Part shown: piece after piece, positions 6,481 to 19,700 of the stretch
How positions within the stretch are numbered: the first letter of the stretch is position 1
Layout of the letters: every line of letters begins with the position of its first letter
Assembly: GCA_013416795.1 (NCBI GenBank)
Contig: RQSC01000019.1
Span: 39,962-62,820, forward strand
Direction of reading: 5' to 3'
From: Prasinococcaceae sp. CCMP 1430
Lineage: Eukaryota; Plantae; Prasinodermophyta
Length of the DNA stretch: 22,859 bases
The notes under the pieces: generated by a model
The model's database searches: none
What the model was told of the DNA's origin: nothing
What the model saw: the letters and a program-made list of their open reading frames with translations, nothing else
Made by a program: the position numbers and the translations under genes

Positions 6481-7100
6481 CCGTAAACGAAATACGTCCC
6501 GCAAAATAAATGCGGTATTGAAATAATCCATGCTCCGCATACAATACTAATATAAAACCTGCAGAGTCGGGAAAACGACGGATATGGTTTTAAAAACCAA
6601 ACGCCTGCAATAACTTCACGGAACACCGCCGAATTGCGCCGCGCGAGCCTCCCGGCGCACCGCGCCGCCCGCCGCGAGAAAAAAAAAGAAAAAAAGAAAA
6701 AAAGGCGCGAGGCGTCCCCGCGGAACGCGGATGTTTCGCCCGGTGCGTCCCACGCCGCCCCCCCTCGCCCCGCGCCCCGCCGTCGGCGCCCCGACCCCGC
6801 TTTCGACCCGGAGTTCGACCCGGCCCGACGCGCACCCCGCGCGCCGGCCTCGCGCGGCGGCCGGGGGCGCGTTCGGGTGCGTTTGTTTCGACTTTTAGGG
6901 TAATGATTAAGAGGGTTAATAACTGCAAACTGCCACGTCGGCACTTTTATGTACTTACTGGCCGGTCACGGAGGGGTGTAGGGGGAGCCAACCGTTCTGA
7001 TCGTGTGTTTGCAGGCTTGCCGCTATGGTTTCCCGTGGGTTCATTTTATAGAAGCCAGTGTTAGGGCCTCCCAATCGCGTACTTACTGATGGTGCGTTTT
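6481..7100. promoter_or_regulatory. Divergent intergenic/promoter region containing two AT-rich blocks (6481-6620, 6890-7100)
   Basis: Lies between the heads of RRN3 (-) and the DnaJ gene (+). TATAAAA occurs on + at 6551-6557 and on - at 7050-7044. There is an A-rich tract with repeating A7G units at ~6677-6703. Confidence 0.5.
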
Positions 7101-7149
7101 GTCCGTTGCCGTCGGTTGGGTCGCGCGGTTCGAGCGAGTCCGCGCGAGT

Positions 7150-7211
7150 GCGCGCGCGCGCGCGTGTTCGTGCGCGTGGGTGGGAGGGTGTGCGTGTGTG
7201 TGGGTGTGTGT

Positions 7212-7246
<35 letters not shown>

Positions 7247-9456
7247 GGGGGTTGGCGGCCATTCGATGCGCAGCGCGGCGAGGGCGAGCGGAGGGCCGCA
7301 AGTTATGAATAGGAATAGGATCTCCGCTCGCAAATGCGACATGTCAGACGGCGCGCGTGTGAGTGTGTGTGTGGGTGCTGTGTGTGTGTGTGTGTATGTG
7401 TGTGTATGTGTGTGTTGTGTGTGTGCGTGTGTGCGCGCGCCACACAGCACGCCCACAGCGCGCCCCCGCGCGCATCTGCCGCCGCAGCGGCAGAAGCAGC
7501 AGCCGCGATGGCGCCCTCCGCCGCGGCGGCGGACCCCTCGGGCGCGGTGCCGCCGTCGTGGGGGGAGCTTCTCAGCGCCTTTGCCGCCGTCGCGGCGTGG
7601 AAGCTGCGCTGCCACGTGCGCGGCCTCGGCAGTGTACGTGTATGGACGCGCGCACGCGCGCGCGCACACACATACACCACGCGGTATGCACACGCACGCA
7701 CGCGCGCACGCACGCGCACACACGCGCGCACACACACATACTGGAGGTTACATGCTCGTCCACACGCTGACAAGCGCTGATGCACACGCACACGCGCGCG
7801 CGCGCACACACGACCCCAGGCGCCGCGCGCGAACGCATACGCCGCGCTCGGGCTGCTCTCCCTCGCCCTCGTCCTCGTCCTCCTCGCCCTTCTGGCGCCC
7901 GCGCTGGCGCGCGCGGTGCTGGCGCTCGGCGACGCGGTGCTGCTGCGGCCGCGGTGGTGGGGCGCCGCGGTGGCGGCGCTCGCGCCGGGCTCGCCGCTCG
8001 GCGGGGAGCGGGCGGTGAGTGAAGAGGGCGCGCGCGCCCGAAGACACGCCAATACACACACACGCGCACGCACACGCGCGCGCACACACACACGAATGCA
8101 CGAGCTGACACGCGCGCGCACGCGCGCGCGCGCAGTCCATCCCGCTCGCCATGTGGCTGGGCGGCGGCGGCTGGTCGGGCGCGGCGTGCGTCGCCGCGCT
8201 CCTGGCGCTGCTCGCCGCGCTGCGCCTGCCGATGGGCGGCGCCGGCCTGTGGCTGGTGGGTGTGCTGGTACGCCGCGCGAGCGCGCGCCGACACGCACGC
8301 ACACGCGGGCGCGTGCACAGCTCGCAGAGCAGCACGCTGATTTGTGTGCGCACGACGCGCTGACGGCACCGGTCGCGGTTGTCACCTGGGCGCGCTCCGA
8401 AAAATGTACACACACACACGCACACACACACACGCACACACACACACGCACGCACGCACGCACGCACGCAACCGCGCGCGCGCGCCTCTCCGCAGGGCGC
8501 CGCGCGATGCGTGCGCGTGGCGTTCGGCGCAGGGTGGCTGTGGGGGCTGGCGTCGCTGCTGGCATGCGCGGCGGTGGCGGTGGTGCTCCTCCTCGTGGGC
8601 GCGGCGGTGTACTCACGCTCGTGCGAGGAGCGGTGGGCGCACGGGCTGGGTGCGCGGCCGGTGCCGGAGGGGTGCGAGGGGGAGGTGCGCGCGCGCGGGC
8701 GCGCGGGCGCATACGCACACACACACGCACGTACACACACACGCACACACACACACGCACACACACACACGCGCGCGCACGCGTGCGCGCGCACACACAC
8801 ACGCACGCACACACGCACGCACACACACACGCACACACACACACACACACACACAGTGAGCTGCGTTTTGCTTGGGCTCGTGCGCGTCGCTGACGGGACT
8901 GGTCGTCGCAGGCGGCGGCCATCCTGCGTGCGGAGAACTTCTTCGACGTGCTGCGGCTCGACTTGGGGAGCGCGCTGGAGGACTTCGCCGACGAGCAGCA
9001 CGTACGCGCGCGCGTGCACCACCACACACGCGCGCGTGCACACACGCTATACACACGCGCACACACGCGCGTCCCCGGGCGCCCCTACTTACACACTCAC
9101 ACACGCACGCGCACACGCACACGCACACGCACGCGCGCACGCAGGGCGGCGCCTTCCGCCCGTCGGGCGCCGCGTGGGACTCTCTGGTGCGCCGCGCGTA
9201 CAAGCGCCGCGCGCTGGCGTGCCACCCCGACAAGTGCGGGGGCGCCCCCGGCGCGGCCGAGGCCTTCGAGCGCGCGCGCGAGGCGTGCGAGGCGCTCGCC
9301 GACGAGGAGGACGCCGCCGAGTACGTGCGGACGCTCATGGCGTGGTACAGGGTGGGCGCGGGAGAGGTGAGCGCGCCGCGCGTGCATGCGTGCATGCGTG
9401 GGTGTATTCTTGTGTGTATGCATGTTCTTGCGTGCTTGCGTGCGTGCGTGCGTGGG

Positions 9457-10096: not shown

Positions 10097-10511
10097 NNNN
10101 NNNNNNNNNNNNNNNNNNNNNNNNNNNNNNNNNNNNNNNNNNNNNNNNNNNNNNNNNNNNNNNNNNNNNNNNNNNNNNNNNNNNNNNNNNNNNNNNNNNN
10201 NNNNNNNNNNNNNNNNNNNNNNNNNNNNNNNNNNNNNNNNNNNNNNNNNNNNNNNNNNNNNNNNNNNNNNNNNNNNNNNNNNNNNNNNNNNNNNNNNNNN
10301 NNNNNNNNNNNNNNNNNNNNNNNNNNNNNNNNNNNNNNNNNNNNNNNNNNNNNNNNNNNNNNNNNNNNNNNNNNNNNNNNNNNNNNNNNNNNNNNNNNNN
10401 NNNNNNNNNNNNNNNNNNNNNNNNNNNNNNNNNNNNNNNNNNNNNNNNNNNNNNNNNNNNNNNNNNNNNNNNNNNNNNNNNNNNNNNNNNNNNNNNNNNN
10501 NNNNNNNNNNN
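10097..10511. other. Assembly gap (415 N)
   Basis: Run of N. Confidence 1.
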
Positions 10512-13535: not shown

Positions 13536-16214
13536 TCACGCCGTCGCAGGCAGTGCGTCGACGTATCGGAGGAAGTCCTCCTCCTCTATGCCGTCGCGGA
13601 TGGAGCGCATCACGCGCTCGAACGTCGACGCGGCGTTGGGCGTGTCCTTGTCGACGCGCGCGCGCATGAAAACCCACTCGTTCTCCTTGTTCGGATCGAG
13701 CGCGCACTCGATGATCTGCCCGACGAAGCTCTCGGGGTCCAGGTCATCTCCGAAGCGCACGGTTGCTCCCTCGACGGCGGGCTCGAGCTCCCCGCCGTAC
13801 TTGCCCGCATCGCGACCCGTGGCCTGCACGTGCAGCGAGTACGCCCCCCTCGGCGAGCGCTTGAGCTTGAAGTCGACCGAGTTCATGCTCGAATATTTCC
13901 ACTTGAGCAAGTCGTAGAACGTGTGCGGCGCGTACGCATCGTCGCGAGGCTGCAGAATGACGCCGTCGCACTCGTGCCCCAGGCCCTTCACCATCTCCTC
14001 GAGCACCCACCTGCTCTTGGACACAGGCCAGAAGTGCTTGCGCCGCACGGCGAAGAGCGCCTTGCCCTCGGCCTCGTAGTCGTGCGGGCAACCGGCCCCT
14101 TGTGCGCGCTCCTTGTTGCGCGGGCCAACGACCTCGTCCTCGATGAGGCGCCAACGCCTGCTGAAGAACGGCAGCCCCACTACGCTCTGTCCGTGCAACG
14201 CCATGATGTCGTAGATGTAGAAGCGGCGGTGGCGCGCCTGTGTCTTTGGGTCAACGTCGACCACCATCTCGCCGTCGAGCAGCGTGCCGTCGTGCACACC
14301 GCCCTTCGGAAAGCGCTTGGAGCGCACGCGCGGCCAGCGCATGTCCACGCGGCGCACATTGAAGGCGCGGTCGATGAGGTACGTGCCGTGGCTGAAGAGC
14401 AGCACCATGTAGCGCGTGCCGTCCGCCTTCCACGTGACGGTGTACGGCTTCTCCTCAAGCTTTCGTTTGTTCTGCGAGTCGAGCGACACGGGCTGCGAGC
14501 CAGGGAAGCGCGGTGAGGGCTCGAGGCCGAGGAGCGTGCACGACGCAGCCTGCATGCGACGCTCAGTTTCCATCGGGACTTGCTCACCGATGATGTCGTC
14601 GTGCTCCATCGGCCGGGCGGGCGGATCCGGCGGCTTGTGATCCTCTTCTGCGCCGTCCCTGCCTGGCGACGCCGGCTTCCACTGGGGCACCGGCGGACAC
14701 AGCAGCGACGCCGAGCGCCTCTCGTGCAACGTGCGGTAGAGCTCGTCGATGTACTCGGGCTTGTATATTCCAGGCGAACGCGCCCTGGCGAAGGCGCGCA
14801 CCACGTCGGAGACCTTGGTGTTCGTGGACATGCGCAGCACCGTGTTCACGATCATGTAGCCCGTGCGGTTGAAGCCGTGCGTGCAGTGCACGAGCACGTG
14901 TCCGACCGGCGGCGGCGGCGGCTTGGGCTGCTCCGGACGAGCGGCTGCGGATACCGTCCCCGCCTGCTCTGCACTGCGCTGCACCTCTTCCCATTTGCGG
15001 ACGGCCATCTGCCACTCCACCTCCTGCGCCTGCATTGCGGCGGTGTGCTCCATGCCCAATATCTCCGTGTACTTGAAGATATGTTCGAAGAACTCGTTCA
15101 CCGCTCGTGGCTCGGGCGCCGCGCCGCGGCCTTTACACGGCACCTTGATGCAGTGCAACGACGCACGCTGCTGCACGGCGATCCTGTCGTAGTAACGCGT
15201 GGTGTTGGTCAGATCGATGATGGCGTCGACCCGCCGGCCCAGCCCGCGCTGCTCAGCGACGAGCCCCTCCGGCGAGTGCTCGCATCCTGAGGGAATGCTG
15301 CCCGCGAAGCGCATGCTGTCGAGCGGCACTTTACATGGTACAATGCGCACGAAAGGACCGCACTGGATAGGTTCGCCATATTTCGGACACTCGAGCCACC
15401 CGCTGGGCAGGCCTGCGGCCGCGGACGGGTCGTGCGCGGAACGCGCAGCCGCTTGGGGCTGCTGCGGGTGCTGCTGCGGTGGCTGTGTGTGCGCCACCTG
15501 CGGCGGCATCTGCTGCGGGTGGGCCGGTTGCCGCGCGTGTTCTGGCACCGCCTCCTCTACAGGCGGGGCCGGTGCCACCGGCCCTGTTGGCGCCGCCGGC
15601 GCATACGCTGCGATCGCCTTCTTCTTCTCGACTGACGCACCAGCGGAGTACGCATTCGCGTACGCGCTGGCGTACGCGCCATCGTCCGGTCGTGGGCGGT
15701 CGGGTCGACCACCTGGCTGCTGCTCGCCCCCCGGAGGAGCCCCCTGCTGCTGATCGTCCGCGTGCGGCTGCTGATGAGGCGCCTGCGCTGCTGGCTGCTG
15801 CGGCAGCTCCTGCGGTGGTGGATCCGGCCCTTTCTGCCCGGCCTGCTCGGCCTCGCGCTTGCGCTTCAGGTTGGCCATGCGTGCGCGCCTGGCAGCGTCG
15901 AGGCTCCCCGCGTGCTGCGCCGCCTCGAAGCTCACCGGCCCGTCGTTGGCTGCAGTGCCACCCCCCACCCTGCGCCTCGCGCCGCTCCTGCCCGGTGCCG
16001 CGTGCGCAGCCGCGGCCTGCGCGGCGGTGGGGGGCGGCGCACCCTCCCTGGCCTGCGGCTGGCCCTGGCCATGCTGCGCCGGCGGCGGCGGGGCGGACGC
16101 GGCGGGAAGCCTAAAGGGCGAGTCGACGGGGGTGCACGCGTACGCCCTGTTCGACGGCCCGAACAGGTCGCGCTCATCCAAATCGGCGGGGTGCGTCTCC
16201 GCTGGCGGCGCCAT
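13536..16214 (-). CDS. RNGTT: Bifunctional mRNA capping enzyme (cysteine-phosphatase-type RNA 5'-triphosphatase + guanylyltransferase), single exon, 892 aa
   Basis: IIDLTNTTRYY and VHCTHGFNRTG (triphosphatase P-loop). Guanylyltransferase motifs FPGSQPVSL, TWKADGTRY (motif I), TLLDGEM, DGVILQP and LLKWK, then an OB-fold ending RARVDKDTPNA. Likely start MAPPAET at 16214; the upstream part of the listed ORF looks non-coding. Confidence 0.95.
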   Translation of the reverse strand: MAPPAETHPADLDERDLFGPSNRAYACTPVDSPFRLPAASAPPPPAQHGQGQPQAREGAPPPTAAQAAAAHAAPGRSGARRRVGGGTAANDGPVSFEAAQHAGSLDAARRARMANLKRKREAEQAGQKGPDPPPQELPQQPAAQAPHQQPHADDQQQGAPPGGEQQPGGRPDRPRPDDGAYASAYANAYSAGASVEKKKAIAAYAPAAPTGPVAPAPPVEEAVPEHARQPAHPQQMPPQVAHTQPPQQHPQQPQAAARSAHDPSAAAGLPSGWLECPKYGEPIQCGPFVRIVPCKVPLDSMRFAGSIPSGCEHSPEGLVAEQRGLGRRVDAIIDLTNTTRYYDRIAVQQRASLHCIKVPCKGRGAAPEPRAVNEFFEHIFKYTEILGMEHTAAMQAQEVEWQMAVRKWEEVQRSAEQAGTVSAAARPEQPKPPPPPVGHVLVHCTHGFNRTGYMIVNTVLRMSTNTKVSDVVRAFARARSPGIYKPEYIDELYRTLHERRSASLLCPPVPQWKPASPGRDGAEEDHKPPDPPARPMEHDDIIGEQVPMETERRMQAASCTLLGLEPSPRFPGSQPVSLDSQNKRKLEEKPYTVTWKADGTRYMVLLFSHGTYLIDRAFNVRRVDMRWPRVRSKRFPKGGVHDGTLLDGEMVVDVDPKTQARHRRFYIYDIMALHGQSVVGLPFFSRRWRLIEDEVVGPRNKERAQGAGCPHDYEAEGKALFAVRRKHFWPVSKSRWVLEEMVKGLGHECDGVILQPRDDAYAPHTFYDLLKWKYSSMNSVDFKLKRSPRGAYSLHVQATGRDAGKYGGELEPAVEGATVRFGDDLDPESFVGQIIECALDPNKENEWVFMRARVDKDTPNAASTFERVMRSIRDGIEEEDFLRYVDALPATA

Positions 16215-16537
16215 CACGCCCCACTTCCCCCCGCCCCCCCGGGGGCACGCCCCGCACCGGTCGCGCGCTTTCGCGCCTCGGCGCCGCAGCGCCGCGTGCC
16301 CGCGCGCGCGTACGAGCAAGCCGTGCGCGTGCCTTTTCACGCACGCTTCGCCGGACTTCGATTCGACCGCGCAAAGCGCGTCGGCGCACGAGCGCGCGGC
16401 ACGGCGGGCACGCGGCCAGGATGGTCCCACCGTTGATGTCGTTGTGGAAGCGAACGACATCGCCGCGGGCTGCCACGACGGGCGCCGGTGCTTCGGCACA
16501 TGCGCCGTGGGCGGCCGGCACCGGAAGCTGCGAGGTG

Positions 16538-16746: not shown

Positions 16747-19700
16747 GCGCTCGCGGCGCGCGCGGCAGCGGCCGCCGCAGCGCACCGGCGCGAGCAGGGG
16801 GGGGGCGATGGCGGCGGCGAGGGAAGCGATGGCGGCGACCAGGTAGGTGTGCGCGACCGCCCAAACGAGCGAACGCGCATGCGAGAGATGCTGCTGTGGT
16901 GCGCGCGCGCACGCACACACTCACACTCACACACTCAATCACACACTCACACGCATACGCGCACGGGCACACGGTCACACTCGCGTGTGCGCCTGCGCCC
17001 AGGTCGATGCGGGTGCGCTCCTCGACAGCAGCGCTGCGCTGGCATCTGGTGGCGGTGCGGCACTCGTGTCCGCCCCGCGCAAGAAGGGCAGCAACGCGAG
17101 CAAGTCCCGGCCGGCCTCCGCGCGACCGCTGAGCAAGTCTGAGCGGCGCAAGCTGGAGAAGCTAGAAAAGGAGCGGCGGCTGCGCGCGCAGCGCGCGGCC
17201 GCGTTCGAAACGATGGCCGCCGCTGCGCTGCCGCGTGCGCACGCGGCGCTGCTGGCGCCCAGCGCGACCATGGGCAAGCGTGCCACGCGGCGCGAGGAGG
17301 CGCGGCGCGGCCTCGCGATGGAGCGCGCGGGCGTGGTCGAGGAGGATGCGCCGCACCTGAAGCGTAGGAAGATCGATGACGCAGGCGCCGACGCCAACGC
17401 CGACGCTGATGACCCCGAGCTCGCCGCTGCTGCCGCAGCGGCGGCGGCCGAGGCGGCCGCTTTCGCTGCGGCGGCGGCGGTGCCCGCTGCGGCGGCGCCG
17501 ATGCCTCTCACCGCCGACGTCGACCCCGACGCTGACGACTGGGACGCCGACGCGGATGGGGGCGGCGAGTTCGACGTGCCCGCCTTCCTTGCGGCACGCG
17601 CGGCGGAGGACGCCGCAGGCGACACGGTGGGGCGCGCCGGGGCGGAGCTGCTCGACAGGGACACCATACCCGCCAAGGCGTACCACAGGCCCGTAAAGGT
17701 GCGCGTGCGCGTGCGGAGGCGCATGCGCGTTTTTGCCGCCGCCAGCATCCAGGGCGCCTTTACCAATTCCGCCCCCTAGCGCCCCGGGAGGGGAAACTCT
17801 CGCGGGTGCCTCGCTACGGTGGGGGATGGATTAATGGCTTGGCCGCCGAGAGTGAGCGCGCCCCGCTTCGCATCTGGCGCGACGGCCAACGTCACCGCCG
17901 CGCCACTCCTCATCAGCGGGGCGCACACGCGCATGCGCGCACGCGCGCATGCGTGCGTGCACCGGCGCGCGCGCGCGAGGCGCGCGCGCCCGAGCTGTGT
18001 GCGTCTGCGAGTGCTAACCGTGCGAATTGCTTGCGCGCGTACGCACGCGCGCGCGCAGCGTCCCGCGGACGTCGAAGAGTCCCGTCAGGGGCTGCCAATT
18101 ATCGATATGGAGCAGGAGATCATGGAGGCCATTGCGGGCAATCTGGTGACGGTGCTGTGCGGCGCCACGGGCTCGGGCAAGACCACGCAGCTCCCGCAAT
18201 TCCTCTTCGAGGCAGGCTATGGCGACGCACAATGCGCGGCGCACCCCGGCGGCATTGCCGTCACGCAGCCGCGGCGCGTCGCCGCCTCGGCGGGCGCACG
18301 GCGCGTCGCCACAGAGATGGGACTCAAGCTCGGGGAGGAGGTCGGGTATCAGGTGCGTGGGCGAGTGGCCGCCGGCATGCACACGACCGTACTCGCATGT
18401 GCGAGAGTGTTGGGGGGAGCAGCGCGCGAGGGTGGGTGTACGTGTGAGCGTGTCGGTGTGTGGGTCTGTGGTGGGTAAGAGCGAGGCAGAGAGAGCGCGC
18501 GCCGCCGCCAGCATCCAGGGCGCCTTTACCAATTCCGCCCCCTAGCGCCCCGGGAGGGGAAACTCTCGCGGGTGCCTCGCTACGGTGGGGGATGGATTAA
18601 TGGCTTGGCCGCCGAGAGTGAGCGCGCCCCGCTTCGCATCTGGCGCGACGGCCAACGTCACCGCCGCGCCACTCCTCATCAGCGGGGCGCACACGCGCAT
18701 GCACGCACGCGCGCATGCGTGTGTGCACCGGCGCGCGCGTGCGCGCCCGCGCGCCGGTATGTGCTGTGCACTCACTACCTTTGTGTCACTGCACACGCGC
18801 GCACATACGCTCGCACTCGCGCATGCAGGTGCGTCACGATCGGCGGTGTGGTGACAAGCCCGCCATCAAATTCATGACCGACGGTCTGCTGCTTAAGGAG
18901 GTTGAGTCCGACTTGCTCCTGGAGAAGTATTCGGTGGTGATTATCGACGAGGCTCACGAGCGCACCTTGGGCACGGACGTGCTGCTCGGCCTGCTGAGCC
19001 GCGCGGTGCCGCTGCGCGCGCGCATGGCCGCGCAGGGCACGCCGCACCCAACGAGCGGTGCGAAGCTCACGCCGCTCCGGCTTGTCATCATGAGCGCCAC
19101 GCTCAGAGTTGAGGACTTCGCCGGCAACCGCGCGCTGTTCCCGCGTGCGCCGCCGGTGCTCAAGGTACCGGCGCGCCAATTTCCCGTGGGCATCCACTTC
19201 GCTCGCCGCACGGAGATGGACGACTACGTGCGCGAGGCGACGCGCGCGGTCTCGAAGATTCACCGCCGGCTGCCCGAGGGCGGCATCCTGGTCTTCCTCA
19301 CCGGCCGCTCTGAGGTCGAACGCGCGGCGTCAGCGACGCGGCGAGAGTTCAAGCGCAAGTCCGCACGCGACAGGCTCGCGGCTTTGGAGGAGGCTGAGAC
19401 GGGAGCGGACGCCGACGAGGAGACGGTTGTCCCGGGTGCGGCGGGGACCGCTGGCGCGGTCGCCCTCCGCGACGACGATGCCTTTGCGGCGGACGATGAC
19501 GCTGAGGCCGCTTGGGGGGACGAGGGCTCGGACGACGACTATGACGCGGGCGCGGATGACGACTTCGACGATGAGTTCCTCGGTGAGGACCTCATTGCGG
19601 AGGCGAACGAGGCACGCGAGCGAGCACGCGCGGAGGGCGGCCAGGACGACGAGGGAGCCGGGGAGGGTGGCGTGCACGTCCTCCCCCTGTACGCGCAGCT

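Follow-up and report, generated by a model that had tools for sequence, protein, structure and literature searches.

Two adjacent introns of a DHX37 gene carry nearly the same sequence, and this repeat pair is a real, young and local copy that fits no known small RNA or mobile-DNA family. The reading we prefer, tentatively and with somewhat less than even confidence, is that DNA-level copying during recombinational repair recently carried a unique stretch of about 250 bp from one of the two introns to the other. The original prediction offered two other options, a pair of intronic non-coding RNAs or a mobile element. Neither is positively supported, and we cannot tell from these data whether either holds. 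Copying of DNA between introns, which was absent from that prediction, fits at least as well.

Host gene and introns

The gene possesses a DEAH helicase core and a DHX37 C-terminal domain, the combination that defines the DHX37/Dhr1 class. Its exon 3 contains the Pfam domains Helicase_C, HA2_C, OB_NTP_bind and DHX37_C, its protein relatives carry the names DHX37, DHR1 or DEAH13, and the corresponding EukProt entry is Prasinoderma coloniale PRCOL_00004828 (exons 2 and 3 were used separately in the protein searches, not as one joined spliced protein). DHX37/Dhr1 is a ribosome-assembly helicase that releases the U3 snoRNA. The host genome is that of a very GC-rich alga. A 70%-identical relative (P0002) was also seen, and its uniformly short contigs look like transcripts.

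Features of the repeat pair and its surroundings are collected in Table 1, where positions are those of the window, that is, the whole 22.9-kb stretch of DNA analysed here. Because a transcript product from MMETSP (P0121) joins the exons across both introns, reading ...HRPVK/RPADVEE... and ...EEVGYQ/VRHDRR... (slashes mark the junctions), both copies lie in genuinely spliced introns. The predicted arrangement, one copy in each of two consecutive DHX37 introns with an exon between them that is not duplicated, is thus borne out, exon 2 being single.

Table 1. Positions of the repeat copies, their parts and the surrounding gene features
Feature	Position	Strand	Remarks
Intron A	17699..18058	+	360 nt, GT..AG, phase 0
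T5 run	17730..17734	+	abuts copy A upstream (A5 on - strand); absent before copy B
Copy A of repeat	17735..17977	+	in DHX37 intron A; gapped homology on to 17988
Complex core, copy A	17735..17925	+	purines and pyrimidines alternate little, in contrast to the surrounding filler; not coding-like
67-nt hairpin, copy A	17858..17924	both	10-bp lower stem, 7+9-nt internal loop, upper stem; z = -4.7 (+), -4.9 (-)
ACA triplet	17925..17927 (also 18691-18693)	+	directly 3' of hairpin lower stem; opens the CA/CG-rich tail
CG/CA-rich tail, copy A	17926..17988	+	8- and 16-nt periodicity
Exon 2	18059..18352	+	98 codons, GSGKT Walker A; between the copies
Direct repeat CAG/GTGCGT	18350..18358 and 18826..18834	+	5' and 3' edges of intron B
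Intron B	18353..18828	+	476 nt, GT..AG, phase 0
9-mer CGCGCGCCG	18496..18504	+	left edge of copy B; second occurrence 18748-18756
Copy B of repeat	18501..18743	+	in DHX37 intron B; gapped homology on to 18755
Complex core, copy B	18501..18691	+	counterpart of copy A core
67-nt hairpin, copy B	18624..18690	both	inferred from core identity
CG/CA-rich tail, copy B	18692..18755	+	counterpart of copy A tail

Extent and identity of the copies

A repeat search and direct comparison showed that the copies have the same orientation, are offset by 766 nt and differ in three of 243 nt (copy A/copy B: G/A at 17937, C/T at 17956 and C/T at 17974). They had originally been described as a 239-bp pair (17735-17973 and 18501-18739) with two differences, and exactly two fall within those limits. 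A gapped BLAST alignment extends over 256 columns with 97.7% identity and ends at 17988 and 18755. The cores are identical in 191 of 191 positions; all three substitutions, together with the indels, are confined to the CG/CA-rich tail, the periodicity of which is that of ordinary intron filler here. The core had been called sequence-complex and unlike the intron filler, and its low purine/pyrimidine alternation agrees with this. As a coding remnant it finds no support, GC content by codon phase not being exon-like and the open frames giving no Pfam match.

The 5' end common to both copies is sharp, and the 3' boundary fades within CG repeats. The flanks, earlier taken to be unrelated, are indeed so on the 5' side (local alignment z = -0.5) but are weakly alike on the 3' side (z = 2.4). 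Distances to the 3' splice site are nearly equal as well, 70 and 73 nt. An older duplication, its core conserved or converted, could account for the alike 3' flanks and these distances.

It is extremely improbable that a single real copy was placed twice during assembly. Such an artefact would explain the near-identity of the copies, which is the one point in its favour; three positions nevertheless differ between them, and the reference is a long-read assembly with Illumina short-read polishing (PMC7455551). Independent ENA contigs, moreover, show copy-specific variants and unique flanks, which argues directly against an artefact. An 847-bp contig of an independent strain (P0140) leads out of copy A across the unique 3' portion of intron A and into exon 2. 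Two others (P0001 and P0124) start in the copy-B-specific tail and continue across the unique 3' portion of intron B to reach exon 3, so that second-assembly support for copy B covers its tail and 3' flank, not its core. At position 17937, copy A of P0140 has the base found in copy B of the reference. The difference at this site is therefore a later change in the reference copy A, and the two copies used to resemble each other even more closely.

Search for further copies and for traces of mobility

In searches that are indirect relative to a whole-genome search of P. coloniale (the window, exact patterns and ORF queries), no further copies were found. The window contains no third copy, even a partial one (blastn, word size 7), and exact patterns had no additional match in JGI metagenomes, IMG/VR or GTDB genomes. 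Among the mechanical ORFs of ENA/Logan assemblies, which hold the DHX37 locus many times over, the open frames of the element retrieved only P0140, from the same locus, and no other protein relatives.

We consider it improbable that a low-copy non-autonomous mobile element, a SINE-like retroposon or a MITE-like DNA element, inserted in both introns, perhaps by a local hop. Near-identical copies with a sharp shared 5' end and unrelated 5' flanks would be in keeping with such an element. So would the 9-nt direct repeat on both sides of copy B, the T5 run adjoining copy A, and the succession of body, stable stem-loop and short-period repeat tail, an architecture reminiscent of the 3' ends that some LINE/SINE partners have. 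Against this stand the ordinary, filler-like periodicity of the tail and the absence of further copies from the searches above; two random insertions into adjacent introns in the same orientation would also be an unlikely coincidence.

Tests for target-site duplications and terminal inverted repeats were calibrated against random positions. The 9-mer flanking copy B is within chance, since 2.8% of random positions do as well, and 26% of those in alternating filler. At copy A no flanking repeat beyond GCGCG was found, and decay of a duplication is no excuse here, because the cores are identical. There are no terminal inverted repeats either, the best terminal inverted match reaching 6 nt. These results speak against a MITE or another cut-and-paste transposon. 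A SINE with a Pol III head is not supported either, as ARAGORN detected no tRNA-like head and Rfam gave no match to tRNA, 7SL or 5S.

Folding of the core

The core contains a well-defined 67-nt hairpin. On the + strand none of 200 shuffled sequences was as stable, the minimum free energy (MFE) structure had a frequency of 0.65 and the internal loop is two-sided; the absolute energy lies about 1.4 SD below the window mean. Folds of the whole element are unremarkable (z = -1.4 and -1.0). On the - strand the upper stem consists of 12 continuous pairs, including two G.U pairs that correspond to A.C mismatches on the + strand, and the loop has a k-turn-like GA/GA appearance. The - strand hairpin reaches -48 to -52 kcal/mol, versus -40 kcal/mol for the + strand, and ranks in the top 0.4% of the window.

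Comparison with known small RNAs

It seems rather unlikely, if less so than a mobile element, that the two introns harbour twin RNA genes, each spliced intron releasing a structured RNA (an atypical or orphan H/ACA-like snoRNA or a member of an undescribed class) whose gene was duplicated into the adjoining intron. Several observations are nonetheless in line with it. Both copies are in sense orientation within introns of a ribosome-biogenesis helicase, and the core forms a complex island amid repeat filler. Its hairpin is far more stable than shuffled sequences (z = -4.7), has a two-sided loop and is followed by ACA. Green algae do have orphan, lineage-specific snoRNAs, and duplication into an adjoining intron is common among algal snoRNAs. 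A precedent exists in Ostreococcus tauri, where 72 of 131 snoRNAs are intronic, ribosome-biogenesis genes make up one third of the hosts and snoRNAs can sit in successive introns of a single host (PMC7671301).

Other results speak against twin RNA genes. The Rfam comparison suggested along with the original prediction was made with Rfam 15 and yielded no family at gathering thresholds; at E values up to 10 it produced low-complexity noise only (IRES and miRNA models on the CG tail). The ACA is simply the first triplet of a CA/CG tail, a tail type common in the genome. The modest z-scores of the whole-element folds and the ordinary absolute energy of the + strand hairpin also count against this possibility.

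The ACA box of an H/ACA snoRNA lies 3 nt from the mature 3' end. These RNAs are laid out as hairpin, hinge, hairpin and tail, the hinge carrying the H box ANANNA (PMC1865073, PMC7671301); their target is bound at a distance of 14-16 nt on the 5' side of the H or ACA box, in a pseudouridylation pocket with loops of 9-13 nt per strand (PMC1865073). No ANANNA was found on the + strand of the core, the nearest sequence being AGAGUG in the hinge at 17849-17854. In the 3' hairpin, 19 nt separate the upper stem from ACA, and the pocket strands measure 7 and 9 nt. The 5' hairpin gives 18 nt to AGAGUG, provided that a 3-bp stem opens, and its MFE fold has no two-sided pocket. Distances from pocket to box are thus 18-19 nt instead of the required 14-16 nt, and the strands of 7 and 9 nt compare with the usual 9-13 nt. 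Bipartite rRNA targets around a uridine were sporadic, rarer than for shuffled guides and not conserved across the sample, which comprised 120 metagenomic eukaryotic rDNA contigs, retrieved with a 5.8S motif that served as a search pattern only. The missing ANANNA, the pocket distances and the lack of an Rfam family rule out a canonical box H/ACA snoRNA.

A box C/D snoRNA has box C (RUGAUGA) near its 5' end, box D (CUGA) near its 3' end and a terminal stem. This class is likewise excluded: the + strand contains neither RUGAUGA nor CUGA, and the - strand does carry CUGAUGA, yet a separate CUGA and a free guide region are both lacking there. Because it has no box D, the - strand is not a C/D RNA. 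The snR30/U17 RNA was rejected as well, since the loop strands UCGCAUC and CUCCUCAUC have neither m1 (AUAUUCCUA) nor m2 (AAACCAU), the invariant motifs of its 3' hairpin loop (PMC7601244).

That the hairpin acts on the - strand, as a kink-turn module of the Snu13/L7Ae type or as a hammerhead-like retrozyme ribozyme, is highly improbable. The run of 12 upper-stem pairs with its two G.U pairs and the exceptional energy would suit this possibility, and so would the CUGAUGA motif; the loop, read as stem/GAU/GA... opposite ...GA/stem, fits the simple k-turn consensus by eye. However, two G.U pairs on one strand are expected about once in four times for a decaying palindrome, the k-turn reading is post hoc and based on four fixed bases, and box D is missing. 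A hammerhead ribozyme has the catalytic core CUGANGA ... GAAA and three helices. Here the core is broken: CGAAG stands where GAAA is required. Helix II pairs poorly, and Rfam gave no hammerhead match even at E up to 10; for these reasons a hammerhead or retrozyme was rejected.

Discussion

Copying at the DNA level is consistent with an identical 191-nt core whose identity decays only in the repeat-prone tail, and with two copies that lie in cis at a distance of 766 bp, share their orientation and are devoid of transposon hallmarks. The CGCGCGCCG 9-mers on both sides of copy B are possible junction microhomologies; copy A has none. According to this explanation, a stretch of about 250 bp of one DHX37 intron would have been copied recently into the next intron, 766 bp off; alternatively, two older copies may have been homogenised recently. 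The process would be ectopic gene conversion or synthesis-dependent, microhomology-primed break repair templated by the neighbouring intron in cis, with the CG/CA-rich filler of both introns supplying short junction homologies, and transposition would play no part. The direction from A to B is weakly favoured, and the copied segment is probably a passenger without demonstrated function of its own.

The event can be dated roughly. At an intron mutation rate measured as 3.89e-10 per site per generation (PMC11884799), the last common template existed about 1.6e7 generations ago, the 95% upper bound for the core being near 2e7. Some observations sit uneasily with a local copy: the presence within the intron of a complex, non-filler island with a well-defined hairpin stays unexplained by it, and the junction microhomologies are not separable from chance (2.8-26%). 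If a local repair copy is all that happened, the event is an ordinary one.

A more far-reaching explanation appears distinctly improbable to us, namely that intron B itself is a recent gain. A break at the exon proto-splice site CAG/GTGCGT would have left a 9-bp staggered-end duplication, and the gap would have received filler partly templated from intron A; or else the core would represent an undescribed class of intron-derived structured RNA. If the intron gain is true, the twin segment would record the birth of an intron through break repair with an existing intron as the copied source, and intron B, patched from intron A, would be a rare and datable case of it. If the core is an expressed RNA, the helicase that releases the U3 snoRNA would host an intronic RNA that is lineage-specific and non-canonical.

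Introners consist of near-identical whole introns, including the splice sites, spread across many genes. The DHX37 introns resemble introners and introner-like elements of Micromonas, Aureococcus and fungi in that near-identical sequence occurs in different introns and that intron B is flanked by a direct repeat with AG/GT. They differ in sharing only their middle 243-256 nt: their splice sites and branch regions are unrelated, as are their 5' parts, which measure 36 and 148 nt, and only a weak likeness links the 3' ends. The pair is known from one gene and in two copies, with no family found; an introner was rejected because the two introns are alike only in part. In Oikopleura, introns have reportedly spread within a gene by reverse splicing, and the likeness of two adjacent introns in one gene recalls that case. 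Reverse splicing would nevertheless duplicate an intron in full, GT to AG, and intron B has nothing that corresponds to the 5' 36 nt or the 3' part of about 70 nt of intron A.

Paralogous snoRNAs in consecutive introns of one host gene, as in green algae and plants, share several traits with the pair: the units lie in the sense direction, one to an intron, within a ribosome-biogenesis gene, the paralogues are nearly identical, and a stable hairpin precedes an ACA. Unlike them, the DHX37 copies have no canonical C/D or H/ACA boxes, pocket geometry, predicted conserved rRNA target or Rfam family. From ectopic gene conversion and templated insertion in double-strand-break repair (SDSA or microhomology-mediated) the pair is set apart in that its mechanism is read from anatomy alone, with junction microhomologies that are not significant and no empty-site allele observed. 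With these processes it has in common a donor in cis less than 1 kb away, the same orientation, a tract of a few hundred base pairs and junctions located in short repeats.

Two near-identical copies in spliced introns of one gene

Judged by its sequence, the gene hosting the repeat is DHX37/Dhr1. When the exons were searched singly, without the joined protein, exon 3 yielded Helicase_C, HA2_C, OB_NTP_bind and the DHX37 C-terminal domain, its named relatives being DHX37, DHR1 and DEAH13, and its product falls into one 90% cluster with P0122, the EukProt protein PRCOL_00004828 of Prasinoderma coloniale. P0121, which derives from a spliced MMETSP transcript, crosses both junctions exactly as the GT-AG introns predict. 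Both copies therefore lie, in sense orientation, in introns that are truly spliced out. In the annotated P0122, the 3' splice site of intron B lies 30 nt downstream of that in P0121, and because of this more downstream site the residues VRHDRRCGDK are missing; either annotation error or alternative splicing may account for the difference. Elsewhere in the window, one ORF of 987 aa codes for a bifunctional mRNA capping enzyme; its N-terminal half is long and of low complexity, and its domains are a triphosphatase of the tyrosine-phosphatase-like type and, after it, the catalytic and C-terminal domains of a guanylyltransferase.

Coordinates of features in the window
Feature	Position	Strand	Remarks
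Direct repeat, copies A and B	17735-17977 and 18501-18743		243 nt, 99% identity, spacing 766 nt (repeat search of window)
Core of copies A and B	17735-17925 and 18501-18691		no differences
End of homology, gapped alignment	17988 (A) and 18755 (B)
3' flanks up to 3' splice site	17989-18058 and 18756-18828
Intron A	17699-18058		GT-AG
Exon 2	18059-18352
Intron B	18353-18828		GT-AG
VRHDRRCGDK codons	18829-18858
CAG/GTGCGT direct repeat	18350-18358 and 18826-18834		bounds intron B
Hairpin	17858-17924	+	67 nt; 10-bp lower stem, 7+9-nt internal loop, ACA directly after
T5 run	17730-17734
Capping-enzyme ORF	13536-16499	minus
CA/CG microsatellite filler	7100-8900		blocks every ~300 nt
Assembly gap	10097-10511		415 N
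Isolated single N	1355 and 16746

Base-by-base comparison of the copies revealed three mismatches (17937, 17956 and 17974), two of them within the 239-nt limits of the original prediction, just as it had claimed. The core is sequence-complex, and every difference is confined to the CG/CA-rich tail, which has a periodicity of 8 and 16 nt. Exon 2, between the copies, is single-copy, in agreement with the earlier claim that it had not been duplicated. The flanks, described as unrelated, are so on the 5' side, where the boundary is sharp, but those on the 3' side are weakly alike (47 identical columns; z = 2.4 relative to shuffled sequence), a likeness that could reflect residual homology or common branch and splice signals. 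Sensitive blastn found no third copy, even partial, within the 22.9-kb window. Immediately before copy A stands a T5 run, an uncommon sequence in a genome of 69% GC; copy B lacks it, and read from the minus strand the run would be an A5 tail.

Reality and age of the repeat

The repeat is real and young. P0140, an ORF on an independent ENA contig of 847 bp, starts within copy A, crosses the unique 3' stretch of intron A and reaches exon 2. P0001 and P0124, taken from further ENA contigs, start in the copy B tail with copy-B-specific bases and read on across the 3' stretch unique to intron B before entering exon 3; this second-assembly support covers copy A and the copy B tail, not the copy B core. 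Long reads, polished with Illumina short reads, underlie the published assembly (PMC7455551). Given these independent contigs and this combination of reads, it is very unlikely that a single real copy was doubled in assembly. P0140 follows copy A and exon 2 as far as ...LCGATG and then passes into unrelated sequence; its contig is probably chimeric.

At the published intron mutation rate of Prasinoderma coloniale, 3.89e-10 per site per generation (PMC11884799), 3 differences in 243 nt place the last shared template at ~1.6e7 generations, and for the core, where 191 nt show 0 differences, the 95% upper bound is near 2e7 generations. The second strain, represented by P0140, has copy A, with 2 differences from the reference in ~340 intron and exon bases. 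At 17937 its copy A carries the base of reference copy B, so that reference copy A must have changed there later. Taken together, the mutation-rate age and the presence of copy A in the second strain make the event, or the most recent homogenisation, about as old as the divergence of the strains.

Origin of the twin copies

The repeat lies outside every RNA or transposon family tested here. Its origin is explained most simply by local copying, and we tentatively favour a DNA-level copy between neighbouring introns by recombinational repair. Such a copy fits the location in cis, in one orientation and less than 1 kb apart, the core identity fading only in simple repeats, the possible short junction homologies at one copy only, and the lack of transposon hallmarks and of a family. 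The route would be ectopic gene conversion or synthesis-dependent, microhomology-primed repair, for which the ubiquitous CG/CA filler could supply the homologies. Repair would account for the origin of the twins, not for the presence of the complex island. The filler blocks at 7100-8900, which mutually form long imperfect inverted repeats, are probably introns of a multi-exon gene and illustrate ordinary intron filler here.

The 9-mer bounding intron B has just these two occurrences in the window, both strands considered. It encodes a conserved Val-Arg after the splice site, and the chance of GTG CGT is ~5% by the codon usage of two long ORFs. Taken only as a hint, it could echo the splice consensus or be the scar of an intron-creating insertion. 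Viewed alongside the twin segment, it is compatible with an origin of intron B in break repair for which intron A supplied the patch. The weak likeness of the 3' flanks and their near-equal lengths (70 versus 73 nt) speak instead for an older duplication whose core was converted.

Copy B is also bracketed by two CGCGCGCCG 9-mers, which might be a target-site duplication or a junction microhomology. With the same slack, such flanks are equalled at 2.8% of random window positions, and at 26% of positions with alternating filler on both sides. At copy A, direct repeats in the flanks go no further than GCGCG, and since the cores are identical, decay does not explain the missing duplication. The element contains neither terminal inverted repeats (best match 6 nt) nor a tRNA-like head. 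Four of its segments had no exact match in JGI metagenomes, IMG/VR or GTDB genomes. The frame open across the whole element gave no hit when 1.84 billion representatives were searched exhaustively with HMMER. In public assemblies, which contain the DHX37 locus at least 10 times and whose mechanical ORFs were compared with the element's open frames, P0140 was the sole match. These searches argue against a high-copy family and leave room for a few copies; we consider a low-copy mobile element unlikely.

Comparison with known RNAs

On the minus strand the element carries CUGAUGAG...CGAA. A hammerhead was rejected there: CGAAG stands where GAAA is expected, helix II pairs poorly and no Rfam hammerhead matches. 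For some other minus-strand RNA module speak a loop agreeing by eye with the simple kink-turn consensus and a modelled hairpin whose stability is greater (-48 to -52 kcal/mol, top 0.4% of the window), since two A.C mismatches turn into G.U pairs. This support is weak, as the kink-turn match depends on just four bases and a decaying palindrome gives two wobble pairs on one strand about one time in four, and such a module appears quite improbable.

An intronic RNA pair had been proposed, yet no Rfam family was found at gathering thresholds in the whole window, and at E up to 10 nothing but noise on the low-complexity tail. A box C/D snoRNA was rejected on the sense strand, C and D boxes both being absent, and so was U17/snR30, whose invariant loop motifs (PMC7601244) are lacking. 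The two putative pockets imply bipartite targets, which were sought on the rRNA-sense strands of 120 eukaryotic rDNA contigs, fetched with a 5.8S pattern; matches were sporadic and fewer than with shuffled guides, an argument solely against a guide directed at conserved sites. Whole-element folds are unremarkable (z = -1.4 and -1.0). Folded by itself, the plus-strand hairpin reaches z = -4.7, with 0 of 200 dinucleotide shuffles as good and an MFE frequency of 0.65, but its absolute energy is only ~1.4 SD below the mean of the 69% GC window. An atypical RNA pair is doubtful, and is retained because complex islands in green-algal ribosome-biogenesis genes are often snoRNAs (PMC7671301).

H/ACA snoRNAs keep 14-16 nt between pocket and box, with loops of 9-13 nt (PMC1865073). 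Here the distances are 19 nt from loop top to ACA in the 3' hairpin and 18 nt from the best 5' hairpin to the pseudo-H box, and the internal loop of the 3' hairpin measures 7+9 nt. The hinge carries AGAGUG, no ANANNA box occurring on the sense strand, and a canonical H/ACA snoRNA was accordingly rejected. The 5' domain folds into an almost unbroken stem without a two-sided pocket, and the ACA is the opening triplet of the CA/CG tail. In outline, the hairpin with its internal loop and trailing ACA resembles the 3' half of an H/ACA snoRNA.
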